Assembly: GCF_000150275.1 (NCBI RefSeq)
Contig: NW_002060946.1
Coordinates: 7,981,555 to 8,045,554, forward strand
Reading direction: 5' to 3'
DNA length: 64,000 nt
Source of the DNA: Trichoplax adhaerens
Taxonomy: Eukaryota; Animalia; Placozoa
The translations under genes and the position numbers were made by a program. Below the pieces are notes generated by a model, which searched no databases, was not told the origin of the DNA, and worked only from the letters and a program-made list of their open reading frames with translations. Below are positions 23,401-36,700 of the stretch, one piece after another (the stretch's first letter is position 1; every line of letters begins with the position of its first letter).

Positions 23401-23583
23401 CCTTCTGCTAATAGTTATCAGCTGATCTACCACCCAATCACAAACAACTTGAAACTTATTCGGTATAAATAATGTTGAATTATTTGGATGCCAAAGTGCC
23501 GTCTTAATCCATGCAATTTTATCCTCCAATTTAATGCTCGAATTGCGTAATTGTGGCGGTACAAATGTCTTCCAGCTCATCAT
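14480..23583 (-). CDS. URB2: Nucleolar pre-ribosomal-associated protein URB2/Npa2, many short exons; internal exon boundaries not all resolved
   Basis: N-terminus ..LRNSSIKLEDKIAWIKTALWHPNNSTLFIPNKFQVVCDWVVDQL resembles the URB2 N-terminus (WEDKLK..FAW..FLPNKEQVLLDW). The last exon LLHEGIFQIIEFCHDSDFTYLNSCVKETMKDSLKALHADYLKFYKFTGKI* resembles the Urb2 C-terminal domain. Helical Leu-rich exons with GT-AG boundaries lie between. Confidence 0.85.
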
Positions 23584-24498
23584 GATGTAGACTATAAATG
23601 AAGTATGAAGTTATTATGATTAAAGCAACTCTAAATAAGATCTCAACTGCACTTTTATAGTCGAGAATTTCCAAATGGATGCGATCGAGCAGTTCCTGTT
23701 CAGCAATTTCCGCTCGCTTATTCAGCTGGCTGCAAGTACCCCCTTAGCTAAACAGCATGGTTGTAATGCATACTCAGTCACCATACACTGTACAATTAGT
23801 ACAGACACACTGGATTATAATGTCCTGTATTGAACAGTAACCTAAGTTTAATAGTATTGTCTATCTTAACCTTAATTACGTACCGTAGAGTCATACAGTA
23901 CACTATACTGAACGGAGCACCGAGCAAGGAGCTGCCTGCTGCAGCTCATGGAGACTCCGAGCTATCGCCTAGTACGTTTATAGCGATATTGGCGACTATC
24001 TTAATGCTTAAAATGCAATAAGTGGACAAAATCTTGAAATTGATACTGCTATTATAACGTAGGCTATATCGTATTTCCAATAGTTAACGTTTAAAATCCA
24101 TGAGATTGATGAGAATAATTCATAGATTGCATTTCGGATTGTGAACGTTTAATTAATTAAACCCAATAAATCTACCAAACTGTTGGGAAGATTTTAGTAT
24201 TCAAGTAGTATGTAGTGTCTGGTAGGTATACAGCATGTTACAATCAACTATAATTTCCTAGTTGTTTAAAATTTAATGCAATTTATGCGAAATTTAAAGT
24301 ACAATCATTCCTCAGTCACCCTTTGTCGTAAAAATACGACCTTAATTATTGATAGGGGATTAAGATATCCTAAAATTTATTTAGGGAAAGGCTCCTACAG
24401 TGCTATTTAGAAGGAGCAACTAACTCATCAGAATGACTATGCTCTTACTAAACAAAATTTGGGAAATTTTAAAAAGTTGCAGCAAATCTTAGATAGAG

Positions 24499-24604
24499 CG
24501 AGCTCAGATCAAGTGTAATTACCATTCATTAGCAGTATATGTCTATACCATAAAAAGTATAGCATACCACTTCGGTCAATTAAGAATTGCTTCATCATAG
24601 CTCA
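24499..24604 (-). ncRNA. Box C/D sno/scaRNA module predicted to guide 2'-O-methylation of U2 snRNA A30 (snoU2-30 / 3' half of SCARNA9-like)
   Basis: Minus strand reads GAGC-T-ATGATGA (C box, 24598-24592) ... TACACTTGAT-CTGA (D box, 24507-24504)-GCTC, with a 4-bp terminal stem in k-turn register. The guide is complementary to U2 AUCAAGUGUA (nt 26-35) and the D+5 rule points to A30. Confidence 0.85.
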
Positions 24605-24852
24605 AATTATACAATAAACAGAAGAGAAAAACATACAGTAACATTACAGTATTGCGTGAAGACTATTAAGAAATATTAAAGAACTATACAATTTATCCTA
24701 AAATCACTACTCACGCTTACTCAAAATCTAGATACTACAGTATGTATCCAACTGTCATTAAAGTAGCAGCAATGACAACTACCATGTTGTAAATTATCAC
24801 TACTGCACTATACAATTTACAATAAAACAAAAAAATCAATAATATAATTTAA

Positions 24853-24937
24853 TCGCTTAAGTAATAGATTCGGCTAGTGTTATCATCATTACGCTTCAAA
24901 GCGCTTCAGTATTGGCTAGAGGTCTTCATGAATAAGC
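24853..24937 (-). ncRNA. Box C/D-like module predicted to guide U2 snRNA G19 methylation (snoU2-19 / 5' half of SCARNA9-like)
   Basis: Minus strand reads ATGAAGA (C-like) cct CTAGCCAATA-CTGA (D'), a short hairpin, ATGATGA (C'), then a second antisense element ACTAGCCGAAT. TAGCCAA pairs with U2 nt 17-23 and the +5 rule gives G19. The terminal D box is degenerate. Confidence 0.6.
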
Positions 24938-26202
24938 TGATTTGAAGAAAACAATAAAAATAATGGAGAGATGTTAGTGAAGAAGATTTGCACCCAATTA
25001 TAACACATCATGAATGCTGCAGATACTGTACAATGTACGCGTACATGTGCAAATCAATTCCTATCATCATTTTAACGAAAATTTTTGCTCATCTTTTTTG
25101 CTATATGCTAGCGATATAGCTTATCGATATACACCACACTCTATTATAATATATCAGAGTATACTGTACTTGAATAATACTATCTGCTTGGCATCATTAC
25201 TCGTACAACCTTGCAACAGTTAGAGCATCGAATGAAACTACAAGTTGGTACACTTAAAAATCAGTTCTTGGCAGAATGTTTACAACTTTTTAAGAGCTAG
25301 TAATCCACTGTAAAAGCGAATAACTCACACAAGCGTATACATGTACTGTACGGTAATATCTTATCGTAAAATAATTTCAGTTTAGGCACATGCTTATAGG
25401 TATAATATTTCCATATTCGTGATAACAAATCTTATTAATGCTCCTTAAATCAGGAATAATGTCGTTGCTTACCTTCAGACCTGAATTTGAATGAAATGAA
25501 ATCACAGTACAGTACTGTAGTGACTGGTCGCAGACCAAATACAGTACAGTATACAGTACTGTAATAAATCGACTTGACACTGTAAAATAAAGGGTACAGA
25601 CTGCCGCACCGCACAGTAGTCTAGGTAGTATGTACTGTAGTACTGTACTCACTATGGAGTACGTAGGACACAGTTAAGTATGACACTATTTTTGCGTTGC
25701 CGGTGTTACAACTGTATGTGTCTGTAACGGCTAAGTAGCACTAATAATGTCACGTTAAAGATTTGCACAGTTTAACCAACACAAATTGAGAGTGAGTGAT
25801 TGCGAACCAAAGATGCTATAACAGCGCTCAAAACTACTTTATTTTCGATCATGGCTGATTAACTAGCTACTGCAGTAGACAGAGCGGTACACTATTAACA
25901 TATCAGGTCACAGACAAGTTCATATTGGCGGTGAATGCCAATAATGCAATTGCAGTGTGGTTTTGCGCAGGTCACTGGTGCAGAACGGTAGCGCAGATCG
26001 CTAGCGAGCAGGGGAGTTTTTGAAGAAAACTTAATCTTAAAAGTCCTTAATTGCCAGCAGCAATATAGTATAGTACAGTGCAGTAAAGTACTGTAGATGA
26101 CTGAACCAATAGCCCTTATTTGAAACCATGGACTACTTGTTTAGTACTCTATGCTGTCCTAGCAGTAGTCCGTGACCAAAACTTTTGCTTCCTTAAGGCT
26201 TC

Positions 26203-26216
26203 GTTACTATGGTAAC
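26203..26216 (+). promoter_or_regulatory. RFX X-box upstream of the ciliary gene IQCG
   Basis: GTTACTATGGTAAC is a near-palindromic match to the X-box consensus GTTNCCATGGNAAC, ~380 bp upstream of the IQCG ATG. Confidence 0.7.
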
Positions 26217-26594
26217 TGATCAACAGCAATCTCAACTTCTTATGCTATACAGAAGTATGACACTGCCCAGAATAATATTCAGTCATTAGTTTTTATACGC
26301 CAATTACTGTATATCGCACCATAACTACAATACAGTACAGTTATTAGAAATAAAATCTGTTTCGTAGGTATAGTACGTGTTTATTAACTACGCTCGAATA
26401 GGGCTGTCATACTGTAGTATCCGTTTAGAATCTACTCGTATTTCCGAAATTCTTGGAAAAAAATATTCTTTCAATTCTTCAGCGAGACGAGAGTTTGATC
26501 GTTTAAATATATATATTATTACGCGATTGTAATTATTTTACAAGACGCCTGTATTACTCTAAATTTTACTCAGTAACCCCAGCGAATTATAATC

Positions 26595-29211
26595 ATGGCT
26601 GCAGTCGATGCTATGTCAACGACTGAATCGATAGACGAAGCAAACGAAAATGTTTCGGCCTTACCTGGCCCGCCTGCAATCAATATCCAAGATCGAATAC
26701 ATATTAACACGGTGTTTCAAGACTCTATCGATCAGTTGGCAGTACTAGGAACAATTTTACCAATTTCGCTTGAACACAGTGCAAAAGCTGATTATGTTGA
26801 AAAGGTAAATAGCTCTACGAATAATATTGCGTTAACATAATTGCTTTACAGTTAGTCATAGTAGTATCGGAATGTTCTGCTTATGTTATATTCGTTCAAT
26901 AGTTCTACTTTTATTAAATGATCATAGTAGCAGTTATAAATCGAATCATTTCTCTCATAAAGGTTGTTGGTGACGAAATTAGTAAGATAGTTGAAGGACA
27001 AAGGCAGCTGGAATCGAAATTCGAGAAGGTCTGTATACACTCACAATAATTAACTTAATTGATTCTTTACTGTGTCCTAGAGCTCTACATAATGTAATAC
27101 TTGCCATAACCCGAATTGATTATGTATTCTAATCATTTATAGCTTATTATGGAGAAAGGGGATGGCAGAGACCGTAAAGTTAAACTTGGTGATAATGATG
27201 ATTATTATGATGTAACGAAATCAATTAAAAGTAGCACACAAGGTTAGAATGGCACTAGAAATACAATCATCGACATTGCATACTTATTATTTGTATTGAT
27301 TAACTACTGTAGGTCAGGTTAAATAAAATTTGATTAACATATATTCAATTATATAAATATATATAGCACTTGGTAGAAGTTTGAAAACTAATCCTCTAGG
27401 TACCGATATATTACTGAAAATGCAAGATGACAGGTACCTAGACGCATGTAGTGCTTTTTAAGATATGTAATGATGCTTACCACCAATACGTATGTTTCTG
27501 ACTATGAACTTGTACCTTTTTACACAATCATATTAGAGGGTTTCTACAAGATATAATGGAAGAGGCAATGGCTGAGGTTCACGAACACGGAAGCTTTAGT
27601 TGTATGGCGGAATCAGTTAAAACCGAACAAAAAAAGAAGAGTGACTTATTACAAATTATACAAAAGTAAATTTTTAGTATGCAATTACTATCCATTATCT
27701 AGTTCATAGAATCATTGTATCTTATATTGTCATTTTGGGGGACTTTCAGGGAAGAGGCTGCTCGCAAGAAAGTAAAAACATTACAAAAACAACTCCAAGA
27801 AATCAAACGTGACAAAGAAGTTCAAATTCAGGTTAATAAATTATGATTAAAGCATTGGTATCCATTTTATATTTAAAAGTAATGCTAGATAAGATATAGG
27901 TTTGTTGATGCCGACTTAAACTAGACTATTTCTTTAATCATTTATTGCATATAAATAGCAACGAAATGAGATGATTGCACACTTGAAAGATCAACTACAA
28001 GAAATGAAGGCAAAGACGAGTATGGAAGGGAAGTATATAAAGAAAGAAGCTGAAGTAAGAGTATTATGTACTCAAAAGAAATGTCAGCAATCTGAAAGTG
28101 AACTGAAAGAAGATTATCAAGTAATAACTACACTTATGCCTTTAATGACAATTATTTAATCATTTCTCATCGTTGAAATATCCTGTGAATTAATTTAACT
28201 TAAATGTGAACTACTGTAGGGATTGCAAAGCAAGATTGATGATGAAAACAGAACTAACAATGAAATTGAAACTTATCTACGACAACAACATAAGGTTAGT
28301 TCACTAAGTAAAAACTGAAAGCCTAAATTTCATTAGGCTTGACTGTTATAGCAATAATTCCAATTTTCACAAATGCTAACTATATCACTAAATACTCAAA
28401 AGAATTTTATGCTTATCAGACTGTTTAATTAGATTACTAATTAATTTCCTTTTTGCTATTTTTATTACGACAGATTCTTGAAGAAAAGGTCGAATATTGG
28501 ATGGAAAAGCATGAGAAAGAAGTTGAAGCAAAGCAGCGTGATTTAGATACATTGAAAGTATGAAAAATAACTAGCTACTAAATCATAGTTTGTTTAATTA
28601 TCTATAATTTGCTAATTTATATTAAACTGTTTCTTCCTTTCACTATATAGTCGAATCGTGCTAATGACTTAGCAAGACTACAAGAATTGACGCAACTGGT
28701 AAAAGCTAACTACTCGTATATCCAACATGCTTGATTTTTCAATCTATTTTAACATTTACTTTCTTTATCAGTATCAACAATATGAAGAAGTTGTTATAGA
28801 AGATAGATTAGAAAAGGAGAAAGCTAAAAAATTAGAAGAGCAAAAATGGAAAGAAAATAGAGCTGCTATTAAGGTACTTTTTTGACTAATTTTAGCATTA
28901 ACAGCCCTATATCTATATGAAGTATAGTAGATTTTGAAGCATCTACCTTATTAATTGAAACCTTATAATTAGTATTGTTTAAATACGGTTAAATTGCAGC
29001 ATCACTGTTTTCTAAGTAAATAAATGAAATTAATTGCGTACAACAGATACAAGCATGGTGGAGAGGAGTAATGGTTCGAAAGCGATTACATAGCAAACGC
29101 AAAAAAAGAAAGGGAAAAGGAAAAAAAGGTAAAGGCAAAGGCAAAGGAAAAGGAAAAGGAAAAGGAAGAGCTAAAGGAATTGGCAAAACACGGCCAATTA
29201 AAAGAAAATAA
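26595..29211 (+). CDS. IQCG: IQ domain-containing protein G / dynein regulatory complex subunit 9, multi-exon
   Basis: Coiled-coil exons (QRNEMIAHLKDQLQEMKAKTSMEGKYIKKEAE; LEEKVEYWMEKHEKEVEAKQRDLDTLK; SNRANDLARLQEL), IQ motif AAIK|IQAWWRGVMVRK and a Lys/Gly-rich tail. Stop TAA at 29209-29211. Confidence 0.9.
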
Positions 29212-30455: not shown

Positions 30456-31651
30456 TTACACTCTGGAAGGATAGAGCATCTAGCAAAAATAGAAGAAAGG
30501 ATGATCGATTAATACAGTTATTTACAACAACTTTCCATCTAAAAGATGTCATAATAGCACAACAAGACTTATAACAAGATTGAATCAAGTTAAGTGATAA
30601 TTAAAAGTTTGTAAGCACCGGATGAGGGTAATCACTATATGTTGATTGTGAATGTAAAGTAATGTACATTGCGAAATTATAGCAACAGTGTCAATTGTAA
30701 GTACGTCAAGCATGTTTATTCGTACAGTACTATAATTCTGGATCTTTATGCTGTAAAATAAATACAGAAGATTAAAGATTTATAGTAAAACTAATGATAA
30801 CCTAGCGGGATCATCAAAGACACATTGTATTATACTGTAGGAAATAACTAATGGCAAGAATGGTGTCATAGTAAAGGGCACTACATTATCCAGATACTGT
30901 AGCGTATGACTAAAATTTTTTGTCAGAATCTGGTAATACCTTCACACCAGCATGCTAGCAACTGCAGTACTTCAACAACCATAACATAGAGTATCTACAG
31001 TAGCGAATAGTACCCAATCTTTCTAATCTTTACCTATTGGCAGATGAAATATTTCTGCGACGGAATATCTTTTTTATTACTTGGCAGATTTATATTATAG
31101 TACTGTGCTATCTATCAGTGTTTGATTTGCTTTCAGACTATTATGACAATAATCATTGCTAGGAAAGTACGATCGTTATTTAATTCTAACTGTCAATAAC
31201 ATACCACATGAACAGTTGCACCCATTGATTTAGGAGGAAGATTGTGTCTAAACTTTGCACGGACTACTCCACTATTACCGTGTGATCTTGTAACCTTGCC
31301 CCACATCACTCTAAATTTGGAAGCATTACGCGTTTTTCGTAAAGTGGCTTTCGTCTTCTTTTGAGCACGGTAAATATATGCGACTCTCTTGCCCAAGTAA
31401 AATTCAGTTTCGTTCTTATTATTTACACCTTCGATACGAATGAGAGATGTATTCGTATGTTGATTGCGTAAGCCTCGCTTATAGCCAAGTATTAAGCCTT
31501 TCGTGTATAGTCTAACGACCAATAATGAAGTGAAATATTTCATTACATTGGACTATACAAAGACAAGGAGTTTCCTACGTATTGCAATCAATTATGTATA
31601 TTCTACTAGCATATCGACAAGGTATGGCGCTAACCTGGTTGAGTTGGACAT
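30456..31651 (-). CDS. RPL35A: 60S ribosomal protein L35a (eL33); coding exons 31651-31635, 31511-31205, 30479-30456
   Basis: Spliced product MSNSTR|[29 protein letters not shown]...[33 protein letters not shown]|MLYPSRV*. Confidence 0.97.
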
Positions 31652-31975: not shown

Positions 31976-32012
31976 CCAGTCTGACAGCAACAATTCGAGA
32001 AGAAGGAAGAGA
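31976..32012 (-). promoter_or_regulatory. Probable non-coding first exon of RPL35A starting with a 5'TOP/TCT pyrimidine tract
   Basis: Minus strand TCTCTTCCTTCTTCTC (32012-31997) followed by donor TGG|GTGAGC at 31975, typical of ribosomal protein gene starts. Confidence 0.7.
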
Positions 32013-32914
32013 TTGTGGCAGCGAGGTAATTTTGCGACTGCGCAATTTAAATACCATCATGACGCATGCTTCCTTTTTCAAGGTACTTCGGACGTGCGGA
32101 CGATCGGCCTCAATAACGCCTTAAAAAAAGGTGCGTTCACACGATGAACTTTTTCCAGGGTAAGGGTACTAGCCGCAAGTTTCAGACGGGCGGACTTTCA
32201 GACCACGTAAGGCCGAAAATATCGAGACTATTTCAATAGTACCAAACTTCTGTGTCTGTTTTCTTATGCACTATTTTAATTTAGAAATGATTGATGAAGT
32301 TATATAACTGCTTTCAAGCAAAAACTTAGTCCAATAGAATAGAGCTCAATGAAATATTACTTATTCAATTAGAAAAAATAAGTCAAACATGGAATCGAGC
32401 ATCACCATACTGCCGACTAGAAAACGAATACAAGTGTTTGGAACAGACAGACAGGCAATACTGTTCAGTCAGTGTTCACTCATTGTTGTGTTTTTTAAGT
32501 GGTTGAAGTCTCTCATAGGCAGAAAGAGACGGGACAGACAACAAACGGTTGTTCACAATAGTCATCATGTGGAGGCTGGCTCTTTTGTTGGTCATTTCAA
32601 CTGTATCGCATGTCTGTAACGATACACTATACTGTCAGCGATTGACATCCAAATTAGCCTGCTAAGTTGATTTTGTGCAGTATGGTATACTGTATACTTT
32701 GATTGGTCCAGCTTGTATTTCCCACGGATGTAAGCAATGTTCTATACAGTACAGTACTGTACCATAGCAATCAAGATGCCGACCGCCTGTACTCCACTAC
32801 AGTACTGTGCATTAGCCCTGTCAAGAACATGTCTCTTCATTCTTCAATTCTTTGCTGGAATTCTTCAACTTTCATGTCAGCAAAAGAATTTAAGGAGTGG
32901 AGACGTAATGTGCC

Positions 32915-33295
32915 GTGTACAGTGTACAGTGTACAAAAGTCTACAGTTTACAGTACTTTACATTGTACTGTCTTAGCAAGTACATTACAGTACAGTACTA
33001 CACCACTGAGAGTGTACTGAATACAGTAGGACGTCAATGGTACAATGTACAGTACTGTACGTACTTACTTGTGACTGAAGTTGTGAGTTCAAGTACAGTG
33101 TACAGTGTACAGTACTGTACCGCATTCTTGATGTACTGTACAGTACAGGACATTGTACAATAGTCTACAGTTTACAGTACTTTACACTGTATTGTATTAA
33201 CAAGTACAGTACGGCACCACTGAGTGTGTACTGAATAGGACGTCAATGTTACGATGGACGTACAGTACTTACTTGCGACTGAAGTGGTGAGTTGT
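32915..33295. repeat. TACAGTA/TACTGTA-rich ~225-bp duplication between the RPL35A and CCNB3 promoters
   Basis: AGTCTACAGTTTACAGTACTTTACA...CACCACTGAG..TGTACTGAATA..GGACGTCAATG..GACTGAAGT occurs twice (~32938 and ~33162). Confidence 0.8.
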
Positions 33296-33414
33296 GATTC
33301 CAATTTTGCTTTTTCTTTGTTCTGTTTCGTTGGTCACATGACATCTGCTCAACCAACCCGTAGCCAGGCTTGAACTAGTGCCTGGGGTAGATTTAAATCG
33401 CATCTTCATGATCG

Positions 33415-33450
33415 CTGATTGGCCAACTCAGCCTAAGCGTCAACTTTGAA
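33415..33450 (+). promoter_or_regulatory. CCAAT box (reverse) plus CHR element in the cyclin B3 promoter
   Basis: CTGATTGGCC (~33415-33424) and TTTGAA (33445-33450); a TTTAAA variant lies at ~33392. This is the usual G2/M gene promoter layout. Confidence 0.5.
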
Positions 33451-33763
33451 AATAACCGCATCCTTCTACAACATCGACATCATCGCGACGCTTGACACAC
33501 TGACTGACGTCAGGCTGATTTACCAAACAAGCGTTTCGACTGGAGGACGTGAAGTAGGTTGAAGCTTGATCGTGTCACCCCACTCGGTTGACCACGTCTG
33601 TGTACATCAGTCTCGGCAACTGCTTGACGTTGCCATTGTTATTCTTGACCTGCCAAGTCAATTTCAGCTTATCCCATACAAATTGCTACAAGCAAGACAG
33701 AAACTTCACCAGCGTTGATTTTCTTCATTTTCAGCCTTCACTGAGGGTAAAATTCATTGAAAA

Positions 33764-36700
33764 ATGGCTCAACTGATTGATAAATTGAATTTAATGGTCA
33801 ATAGTAAAGGCCTTCAGGTAAATCGATCGATCCTAGATTGAAATTTCATGTCGTGGAGTAGCCGGTAGATGTCAACTCGCTCTTTGTCAGTTTTGCCATT
33901 TTTGTGTACACAGTATCAAACCTTCAATGAACAACATGACTGTCATTCTATCCTATCCCTAAATATCATTTCAGCCTTGAATTTTCAATAGATTCATTCT
34001 GTCTAGTCCATTGAAATCATGACTAATCTTGTCATGACAGTTTATAAAAGATAATTGTATCAAGAGGATTCAAATCTTGCATGACATTGAATCATTTTGC
34101 TCTTTCTCTCTCTGACTCTCTCTTTCTCTTGCTGCACTTTTCAAACGTTTTTTTCTCCTTGTATTTTTTCCTCTTTTCAACCGTACACGCCCCCCTCTCT
34201 ATGGTCAAGCATCCCAAAGCCAATTCAGTAACGGCTGCCAAGAAAAGAACGATCGAAGAATCATCCGATGATTATCCATTAACCAGTAAGAAAAGAGCTG
34301 TACTAGAAGATTTAACGAATGTAAGTACATCAAGAATTGAATCCCTTGATCGTCATGTTTGCAATTTTTATCTCTCTCTTTCTCTTCCATGCATATTGCT
34401 AATCAGATCATAGTGTATGGGTAATAACGACAAATGGATAAGAATGGAAAACAAACTTGAAATTTTCCATCTTACTTTACAGTCGACAACTTGATTCTAC
34501 ATTTCATTCTATTGATTACTCGTGGATTACGTAATGTATCCAGATATCCTCTAGACCGTAGACGTTTCATGATGTAACATTTTAAGCATTATGTATTGTA
34601 ACACGATACCATGGCAAAGGAAAGAATCGTAAATTGTAGTGTACTTTAAAGGATGGTACCTCCTCCATCAATCTCAACTTTCTTACATGACCAAAATCGA
34701 AAAAGGACCAATTTTTGACACGTTTCATGACAGGATCTTTCCCGTAAGATGTTTACAATATGTATAACCAACCATATCCAGACACGTAGACTTTGATTTA
34801 GGTTCAATTGAACCAAAAAAATGACAAGTTTATTCACAACGAGAATATATAATCATTATACTGCGTATAAAATGTTGTTAGTGGATAAATTCATTTAGCA
34901 AGAACGATATCGTCAATAGGAACTGGTTTTTCAATTGGTCATAATTTGTAGTAGATACTGCATGGAATAGATAGAATTAAAGATAGAAATACATTTTTCG
35001 TCAAATATAAATTATAAATCAAAAGCTACTTTCAATCCCGAAACAGTTGTATTTTCAGATTAGAACGTAATATTCAAGAGAACAGTGTCAATGGATATTA
35101 CAATTATCAGAGTGGTATCGAAATGGTAAACTATGCTCAATAAGGAGAGAAGTAGTATAATAAATAGAGGATAATAGGTCGATTAAAAATACGTGACGAG
35201 TTGATATACTATCGTAATCCTGTCCATGTATACCAACAAGAACTATACTAATTACAATCCACTGATGTAAACCGTCACTTGAGTACAGTATACTGTATAA
35301 TGTACTACTTTACCTCACCATATTGCAACAATTTATGAAGGCGTTCCGATTGTAAAGTTATACTGTGTATGACTAATTTTATCGACTGTATAATCCGTGT
35401 CAAACACGAATTCTCCGCAATAATTACTATTGTTGAAGAAATCAGCTTTGTTGACTCTACATAACAAATATTTTTCCTGGCATGGTGTCATTACTGTAGA
35501 GAGTGTAAGTTTAGCAGTGAGTTACCTAAGAAATAATGGATCAATTTACTTACATGTTAATTAAAATAATGGCTCAGTAACATGATTTAAATTGACAACG
35601 GGTCATACATGCATAGAATGAAATGCTAGTGCTAGCAATACAACAGATGTTTATTATCTACCAAAGAATAATGAAAAGACAACATTTTTGACAGCTTGTG
35701 ATCGAGGAGTGGGAAAATCCGTATTCGCTTCTTTGCTATTGCCTAATCAAGTATCTCAAAGTATACATATACCATGCATATTATTGTGAAACTACAGTCC
35801 AAACAATAGCTGCTGATGATTCATTACAAACAAAGTTATCATAACTTCAGCCCATTCAAACGATTTATGCTTTAAAGTCGTATTCTAATTAATAAATGCC
35901 ATGTTGAAAACGATATGAATTCAGTTAAAGAAAATTAAAAAGAATTTTCAGCAGACATAGGCTCTTAAAGTTTAATATCCGCAAAAAGTAATTCTAGATC
36001 TACTGGATTACATTGCGTGAAACTACAGTGTAAAAGAATTGACCTATTGAATAGTTGACTAAGCTACCGTAAATTATAGCTTCATAAATGCAAGTATTAA
36101 ATTAATGTATTGATTTTCTAGGCTAGCCAAGACACCTTATTAAAATGGCATAATCTAAAGAAGCAACAAACGAATAAGAACAACGTCGAGCAAGTGCAAC
36201 AACAAAATGAAGTTAAAGATCATGAGAGTGATTTAGGTCGAATTAAAACTAATATACATGAATTCCTCAAATGCGATGAAGATGATGTCGTCGATGGTAA
36301 AAGGTATTACAAACTTGTATGATATGTGTGTTTTTGAACCTGAAAATTTCAAATTTGAAAGGATATAAATTTATTCTGAAAGCAGTATATTTACACGATA
36401 AATTACATTTGCCTAATATTGCATAAAAATTTTATGACTTATCAGAATACTTTATTTTTTTAGCAGCTGTAATGAAAATGAAGAATCTAAAATTTCAACA
36501 GCACACCTTTCAACGATACTCAGTGAGGTAAAATAACTAATATCTTTACTTACAATGTTACGACGCATTAGTTTGAACTACATTTAACTTACATTTCGAT
36601 TACAGTGTAAACCCTGATCTACTAGTACTACATAATAATATGATATATAAGGGTTTCACTCGTTACCAACATCACTTTGCGAGTACTTTAATTTAATTTC

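Follow-up and report, generated by a model that had tools for sequence, protein, structure and literature searches.

Linked candidate box C/D guides for methylation of U2 snRNA at G19 and A30 in the placozoan Trichoplax adhaerens

Two box C/D modules with antisense elements to U2 snRNA lie in tandem on the minus strand of Trichoplax adhaerens DNA, the upstream one (M1) selecting G19 and the downstream one (M2) selecting A30. They were analysed within a 64,000-nucleotide stretch, referred to here as the window, and the reading that best accounts for them is that both work as fibrillarin-type box C/D guides for 2'-O-methylation of U2, to which we give a probability of roughly 0.6 on the basis of sequence. 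M2 would be this animal's member of a widespread eukaryotic family of U2-Am30 guides, with a D-box element complementary to U2 nt 26-37, for which the fifth pair counted from box D falls on A30. M1 would act through a D'-box element that pairs with U2 nt 15-23, with G19 at the fifth pair, and would be built inside-out, the consensus kink-turn being the internal D'-hairpin-C' and the terminal boxes being degenerate. Together with an orphan third module (M3), the two guides would most likely be excised from one RNA polymerase II precursor that starts at a GTACTGTA-repeat promoter about 0.5 kb upstream, near 25.5 kb. In guide content and order, such a locus is predicted to be the functional equivalent of vertebrate SCARNA9.

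Gm19 and Am30 are established modifications of U2, guided by scaRNA9 in human (PMC7960923, PMC6412121); human U2 Gm19 is needed for splicing activity, and m6Am30 is reported as conserved over a range that extends from S. pombe to human (PMC7960923). In the AT-rich Trichoplax genome (105.6 Mb in 1414 contigs), an Rfam search detected a single U2 gene:

L001 1501-1689 (G000:C1410:1489810-1489998): U2 gene, Rfam match of 154 bits

The 5' start of this U2 is of the usual sequence except at position 16, which is A. Position 16 of U2 is usually U. Genome-wide, U1, U4 and U5 were likewise matched once each, and U6 by two strong matches and one weak one. Both antisense elements are complementary to the host's own detected U2, and counting five positions from box D or D' leads to A30 and G19, as the earlier note had proposed from the general conservation of the U2 5' region. 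In a scan of the 64-kb window for elements of at least 8 nt beside a D-type box, those of M1 and M2 were the sole antisense elements of at least 9 nt to U2 nt 1-70 that abut CTGA. As a control, strict patterns for guides to U2 G25, C40 and U47 returned chance-level, box-less matches only, a result that does not imply absence of such guides. Matches of 9 nt between the modules and rRNA were at chance level.

The case is strongest for M2, which very probably is a genuine U2-A30 guide. Its parts can be read as follows:

24500-24603, minus strand: M2, canonical box C/D RNA (snoU2-30 match, fold, antisense element)
24603-24600 and 24503-24500, minus strand: GAGC and GCUC, the strands of a 5-bp GAGCU/AGCUC terminal stem
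24592-24598, minus strand: box C, AUGAUGA (sequence and snoU2-30 alignment)
24508-24519, minus strand: antisense element, pairs with U2 A26-U37 and selects A30 (12 pairs including one G.U)
24504-24507, minus strand: box D, CUGA (sequence and snoU2-30 alignment)

Read 5' to 3', the module thus consists of GAGC(U), AUGAUGA, a 66-nt interior, UACACUUGAU, CUGA and (A)GCUC, and at the DNA level TACACTTGAT (24517-24508) stands directly before CTGA (24507-24504). The full C box, D box and terminal stem that had been described for the downstream module are all present at 24603-24500. The duplex of the antisense element with U2 has a predicted energy of -15.8 kcal/mol, a value equalled by none of 1000 shuffled guides, and the fifth pair from box D is A30. 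Within the interior, a D'-like UUGACCGA and a C'-like AUGA flank a 16-bp hairpin, and the fold as a whole, terminal stem plus internal hairpin, has a z-score of -4.06. For the D'-like element, no target was found among snRNAs and rRNAs.

The covariance search suggested in the earlier note gave a divided result. M2 was matched end to end by Rfam snoU2-30 (RF00493), with 32.9 bits over model positions 1-70 and an E-value of 3.5e-4 in 1.5 kb, and was the top snoU2-30 candidate among those scored genome-wide (E 0.006). The score falls below the snoU2-30 gathering score of 60 bits, mainly because the interior is 66 nt in M2 and 31 nt in the model, so that the insert is penalised; in the window, no Rfam family reached its gathering threshold. 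Both ends of M2 are nearly identical to the snoU2-30 consensus, and the 3' end that the earlier note gives for the human RNA agrees with that consensus (...CUACACUUGAcCUGAGCUCA). For the G19 guide the search found nothing: Rfam snoU2_19 (RF00494) had no match with E up to 10, whether 1.5 kb, 131 nt or the whole genome was searched.

How specific the snoU2-30 match is for SCARNA9 can be judged from a metagenome control, in which one exact-pattern scan of contigs for the A30 guide returned six matches. Two of the six lie in bacterial coding sequences, and the other four (L028, L029, and L030 with L033) resemble genuine A30 guides of GC-rich eukaryotes, with the same antisense element and CTGAGC:

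L028 9494-9593, minus strand: A30 guide in metagenome contig
L029 598-696, minus strand: A30 guide in metagenome contig
L030 7511-7615, plus strand: A30 guide in metagenome contig
L033 14423-14527, minus strand: A30 guide in metagenome contig

A location of L029 in an intron of Elongin C was considered and had no Pfam support. On snoU2-30, L028 reaches 30.2 bits; its score on snoZ119, a plant family, is 36.1. Since this non-placozoan sequence scores like M2, the snoU2-30 match identifies a U2-A30 guide and not specifically a SCARNA9 orthologue. A G19 element was found near none of the four, and the linkage of G19 and A30 guides is therefore the trait that the Trichoplax locus has specifically in common with SCARNA9.

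In the case of M1, the anatomy is less orthodox:

24851-24942, minus strand: M1, atypical box C/D module with U2-G19 antisense element (stem, boxes, complementarity)
24923-24929, minus strand: variant box C, AUGAAGA, one change from RUGAUGA, at position 5
24910-24919, minus strand: antisense element CUAGCCAAUA, pairs with U2 nt 15-23 and selects G19 (9 perfect pairs)
24906-24909, minus strand: box D', CUGA, directly 3' of the antisense element
24891-24904, minus strand: 5-bp hairpin closing the internal D'/C' motif (-5.5 kcal/mol, 72% of the ensemble)
24883-24889, minus strand: box C', AUGAUGA, consensus by sequence
24864-24877, minus strand: degenerate second guide copy, CUAGCCGAAU-CUAU, in place of a D-box guide

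The order of elements is therefore a C-like box, 13 nt ending in the guide, box D', the hairpin, box C', 15 nt with the degenerate copy, and CUAU, all enclosed by a terminal stem of 9 bp with one bulged A (24942-24933 with 24859-24851). On the DNA level the guide reads CTAGCCAATA at 24919-24910, and the guide followed by CTGA that the earlier note had placed in an upstream minus-strand module is found at 24919-24906. M1 is without a box D, because the CUAU at the expected place has no GA. The boxes that conform to the consensus are the internal D'/C' pair, and the consensus kink-turn is therefore the internal D'-hairpin-C', the terminal motif being defective. Another AUGAUGA, at 25070, was considered as an alternative box for M1 and set aside, as it has neither a partner D box nor a stem. 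The degenerate copy has CUAGCC, AAU and CU in common with the D' guide, suggesting an internal duplication with a decayed D-side copy.

The M1/U2 duplex of nine perfect pairs has an energy of -13.1 kcal/mol, which 0.7% of shuffled guides also attain, and the fifth pair is G19. A U of the guide sits opposite the host-specific A16 of U2. Against a version of U2 with U16, the energy is -11.4 kcal/mol, so that 1.7 kcal/mol is lost, and seven contiguous pairs are left. M1 had no match to any Rfam family, and its whole-module fold is not better than shuffles (z = +1.1). The inside-out design, with an internal kink-turn and degenerate terminal boxes, is compatible with activity. In Drosophila scaRNA:MeU2-C28, an internal kink-turn can suffice for function (PMC6770171). 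In human, the twin scaRNAs 2 and 17 likewise have 5' domains with non-canonical boxes; alone, these domains are unstable (PMC5612246). On balance, the M1 element leans towards function as a U2-G19 guide.

What sets the locus apart in the genome is the combination of the two guides. The modules had been described as about 250 nt apart on the minus strand, and the measured gap is 247 nt; their order and orientation, G19 and then A30, also agree with the vertebrate arrangement as described. The A30 motif TACACTTGATCTGA has three copies in the 105.6-Mb genome and the G19 13-mer TAGCCAATACTGA has ten, and the two exact motifs are found together at this locus alone, 402 nt from each other on one strand, with the G19 motif first. 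For such linkage, a rough expectation, calculated post hoc, is 3 x 10/2.1e8 x 500, or about 7e-5. The 671-nt locus is single-copy in the genome. Among its ten copies, the TAGCCAATACTGA of M1 alone has both TGATGA within 20 nt downstream and a C-like box upstream; the remaining nine have no boxes. The box geometry as such is less telling: a C box, a D box and a stem of at least 5 bp together describe one candidate in the window, M2, and 0.7 are expected from Markov shuffles. Box C/D geometry alone arises at chance frequency in this AT-rich window, and the weight of the argument comes from the guides.

The other two TACACTTGATCTGA copies are either without a terminal stem or in apparent coding sequence, and have no model match. 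One of them, at L008, was rejected as an A30 guide for its place in apparent coding sequence. The other, at L010, was considered as a second A30 guide and rejected, as it shares 18 nt (TACACTTGATCTGAGCTC) with M2 but has no terminal stem and no model match. At about 1497-1625 of L010 (minus strand), these 18 nt are identical to the 3' end of M2, and a TGATGA lies about 100 nt upstream; the 14-mer is at G000:C1414:6256883-6256896, with the 18-nt identity extending 4 nt beyond it. This stretch is a chance match or a decayed copy.

The surroundings of the two modules had been taken for an apparently empty intergenic region, which holds insofar as the locus lies in a 3-kb stretch without credible ORFs between divergent genes. 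The stretch also contains a third C/D candidate, splice-like signals and promoter-type repeats, and to that extent is not empty:

25343-25640, strand not assigned: cluster of GTACTGTA repeats, probable promoter region, like repeats at snRNA genes
25467-25472, minus strand: consensus 5' splice-site-like GTAAGC (gaag|GTAAGC) just downstream of repeats, of presumed use
24762-24809, minus strand: spacer hairpin between M1 and M2, 18 bp with four G.U pairs (-22.5 kcal/mol, z = -4.85)
24301-24440, minus strand: M3, a third candidate module of C/D type (terminal stem of 10-11 bp, fold z = -3.34)

The neighbours are a multi-exon minus-strand gene, whose first coding exon begins at 23583, and a plus-strand gene that begins at 26595. 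Single exons of the downstream minus-strand gene, searched separately, gave no Pfam or PDB identification; one exon has a weak, sub-threshold match to HEAT repeats, and the first exon has counterparts in two 75-79% identical ORFs on short ENA/Logan contigs of related placozoans. A CEP295-like host was not recognised around the locus, and the plus-strand neighbour is on the opposite strand to the guides.

The spacer hairpin ranks in the top 0.1% of 61-nt windows and among the six or so most stable in the 64 kb, and could serve as a structural or RNase III-type processing element. The spacer also has splice-like signals, namely a polypyrimidine tract with AG at 24809-24808 and GTAAGC at 24720, which would delimit a possible 87-nt exon. 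No other AG in the spacer makes a good 3' splice-site-like signal, and this one overlaps the 18-bp hairpin. Signals of this kind would allow the guides to lie in consecutive introns. M3, which starts 60 nt downstream (3') of M2, has UGAUGA at 24430-24425, CUGA at 24315-24312 and three internal hairpins; it has no Rfam match, and no antisense match to U1, U2, U4, U5, U6 or rRNA was found in it. It is a candidate for an orphan guide or for a chance structure. The 60 nt between M2 and M3 leave too little room for separate introns, given a normal branch site, and at least two modules therefore probably share a precursor segment.

The GTACTGTA cluster and the splice donor lie about 0.5 kb upstream of the modules, the repeats themselves 0.4-0.7 kb. 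Similar repeats are found at -90 to -150 of the U2, U4, U5 and U6 genes, not of the U1 gene, and in the window they cluster at three places: 25343-25640, upstream of RPL35A (32000-34000), and at 58-61 kb. They appear to be a promoter or enhancer element in general use in this genome. The ORF at 31193-31543 (minus strand) is a single exon that encodes ribosomal protein L35Ae (Pfam E 3.8e-43). Each of the five snRNA genes (L001 and L034-L037) has a PSE-like CCCATAAKTGAA at about -55, and they share a TATA-like element at -30; octamers of the ATGCAAAT type accompany most of them, and the repeats between -90 and -150 of the U2, U4, U5 and U6 genes have the form GTACTGTAC. Single-copy snRNA genes and a PSE at about -55 agree with published data for Trichoplax adhaerens (PMC2655684). 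On the minus strand of 24000-27000, no PSE-like CCCATAAKTGAA was found within two mismatches.

It is conceivable, though doubtful, that M2 alone works as a guide and that CTAGCCAATA-CTGA upstream has no function, being either a coincidental match or the remnant of a decayed guide. Such a reading draws on the ten genomic copies of the G19 13-mer, on a duplex of just 9 bp, and on the defects of M1 itself, which has no box D, a variant box C, an unremarkable fold and no snoU2_19 match. It has to set aside the linkage of M1 to the A30 guide, in the SCARNA9 order and with no change of strand, for which the expectation is the small one given above, and the fact that the match extends over A16, the position peculiar to the host U2. 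Two further features would likewise have to be fortuitous, the terminal stem of 9 bp that encloses the module and the box C' of consensus sequence that follows the hairpin, and the strict patterns for G25, C40 and U47 turned up chance matches with no boxes at all. A different alternative concerns transcription: as in the case of vertebrate scaRNA2 and scaRNA17, the locus could be a gene of snRNA type, with its own transcription start and a capped product. The snRNA-like GTACTGTA repeats upstream speak for this, yet the PSE-like element that all five snRNA genes have is not found in 24000-27000, and the repeats, which are found before RPL35A as well, lie further from M1 than an snRNA-type start would allow; an arrangement of this kind is very improbable.

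A strict SCARNA9 orthologue is a further alternative. Here, M1, the 247-nt spacer and M2 would make up a single box C/D scaRNA of the twin type, about 440 nt long, in which the spacer hairpin would act as a localisation or processing element and M1 would rely on its internal kink-turn. We regard this reading as a minority possibility, and the same holds for its corollary that cleavage at the spacer hairpin would yield two monomers in part, as in human scaRNA9. The human RNA is a 353-nt intronic transcript with a 175-nt GU-rich spacer, partly processed to two monomers (PMC4395269, PMC4041459), and the guide pair and its order are the same as in Trichoplax. The degenerate terminal boxes of M1 resemble the 5' domains of human scaRNAs 2 and 17 (PMC5612246), and the unusual stability of the spacer hairpin would suit such a structural or processing role. 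Moreover, the A30 guides of other eukaryotes have no G19 partner, showing that the linkage is not universal, and the 60 nt from M2 to M3 are too close for one snoRNA per intron, which makes several modules per precursor plausible. Against this stand the lack of GU/UG repeats in the spacer, such repeats being the vertebrate Cajal-body signal and the TDP-43 site in SCARNA9-type scaRNA (PMC4041459, PMC6412121), the AG at 24809-24808 and the GTAAGC at 24720, which could bound an exon between the modules, the unmatched snoU2_19 model, and the failure to recognise a CEP295-like host in searches of single exons. The deep metazoan SCARNA9 orthologue put forward in the earlier note accordingly survives in part: the G19/A30 fit, the order and the snoU2-30 match are in its favour, the snoU2_19 model and the GU spacer are not, and no CEP295-like host was recognised. 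The genome encodes a coilin N-terminal domain (L042, G000:C1413:6303727-6304050; Coilin_N, 88 bits), and a Cajal-body scaffold protein is therefore probably present. With regard to the preferred reading, in which both modules act as U2 guides, M1 and M2 as separate RNAs are ranked somewhat ahead of a single RNA of about 440 nt. What the sequence itself establishes is the anatomy of the modules, their complementarity to the U2 of the host and their uniqueness in the genome; from these we infer expression of the locus, methylation of U2, the precursor and its processing.

In the published survey of Trichoplax non-coding RNAs, just four C/D snoRNAs that guide modification were found in addition to U3, and none of the RNAs was a guide for an snRNA (PMC2655684). 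A linked G19/A30 pair in a placozoan would make guide-directed methylation of the U2 5' region old in animals, and the linkage known from SCARNA9 may be ancestral and not a vertebrate invention. Should the single RNA of about 440 nt be real, the SCARNA9 G19/A30 doublet would predate the placozoan-bilaterian split, and its guide would have co-evolved with the lineage-specific change of U16 to A16 in U2. The guide base that matches A16 of a single-copy U2 would offer a clean and testable case of guide-target co-evolution. The gene itself is of a known kind, and does not reveal a new kind of system.

Several known systems can be compared with the locus. Among invertebrates, the Drosophila mgU2-25, -28, -41 and -48 RNAs, which are single-domain C/D scaRNAs, are also box C/D guides for U2; a guide for U2 G19 or for the A30 equivalent, or a tandem arrangement, is not among the Drosophila RNAs of PMC3884663. 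Non-coding snoRNA host genes of GAS5/UHG type and the polycistronic snoRNA clusters of yeast and plants are similar in having several C/D modules on one strand of a non-coding stretch, with a promoter-like region and a splice donor upstream and hairpins in the spacers. The targets identified for the locus are, however, in an snRNA and not in rRNA, and the 60 nt between M2 and M3 depart from the animal rule of one snoRNA per intron. The individual A30 guides offer another comparison: the snoU2-30 family (RF00493), L028 and L029 have, like M2, a box C, UACACUUGAU, a box D and a GC-containing terminal stem, and L029 also has the D'-like UUGACCGA and the C'-like AUGA. M2 differs from the snoU2-30 model in the 66-nt interior with its 16-bp hairpin, as against 31 nt, and from the other A30 guides, which stand alone, in being accompanied by a G19 guide. 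SCARNA9 itself is a further close counterpart. The Trichoplax spacer, at 247 nt and without GU repeats, differs from the human one of 175 nt, which is GU-rich; M1, which the snoU2_19 model does not recognise, has its terminal boxes degenerate and its guide at the D' box; no CEP295-like host was recognised; and the guide is fitted to a U2 with A16. What the two have in common is a pair of guides for U2 G19 and A30 on the same strand, the one for G19 coming first in the 5'-to-3' direction and the other following after a few hundred nucleotides, and a 3' domain with ends that are nearly those of the Rfam consensus (GAGC-N-AUGAUGA ... UACACUUGA-Y-CUGAGCUC).
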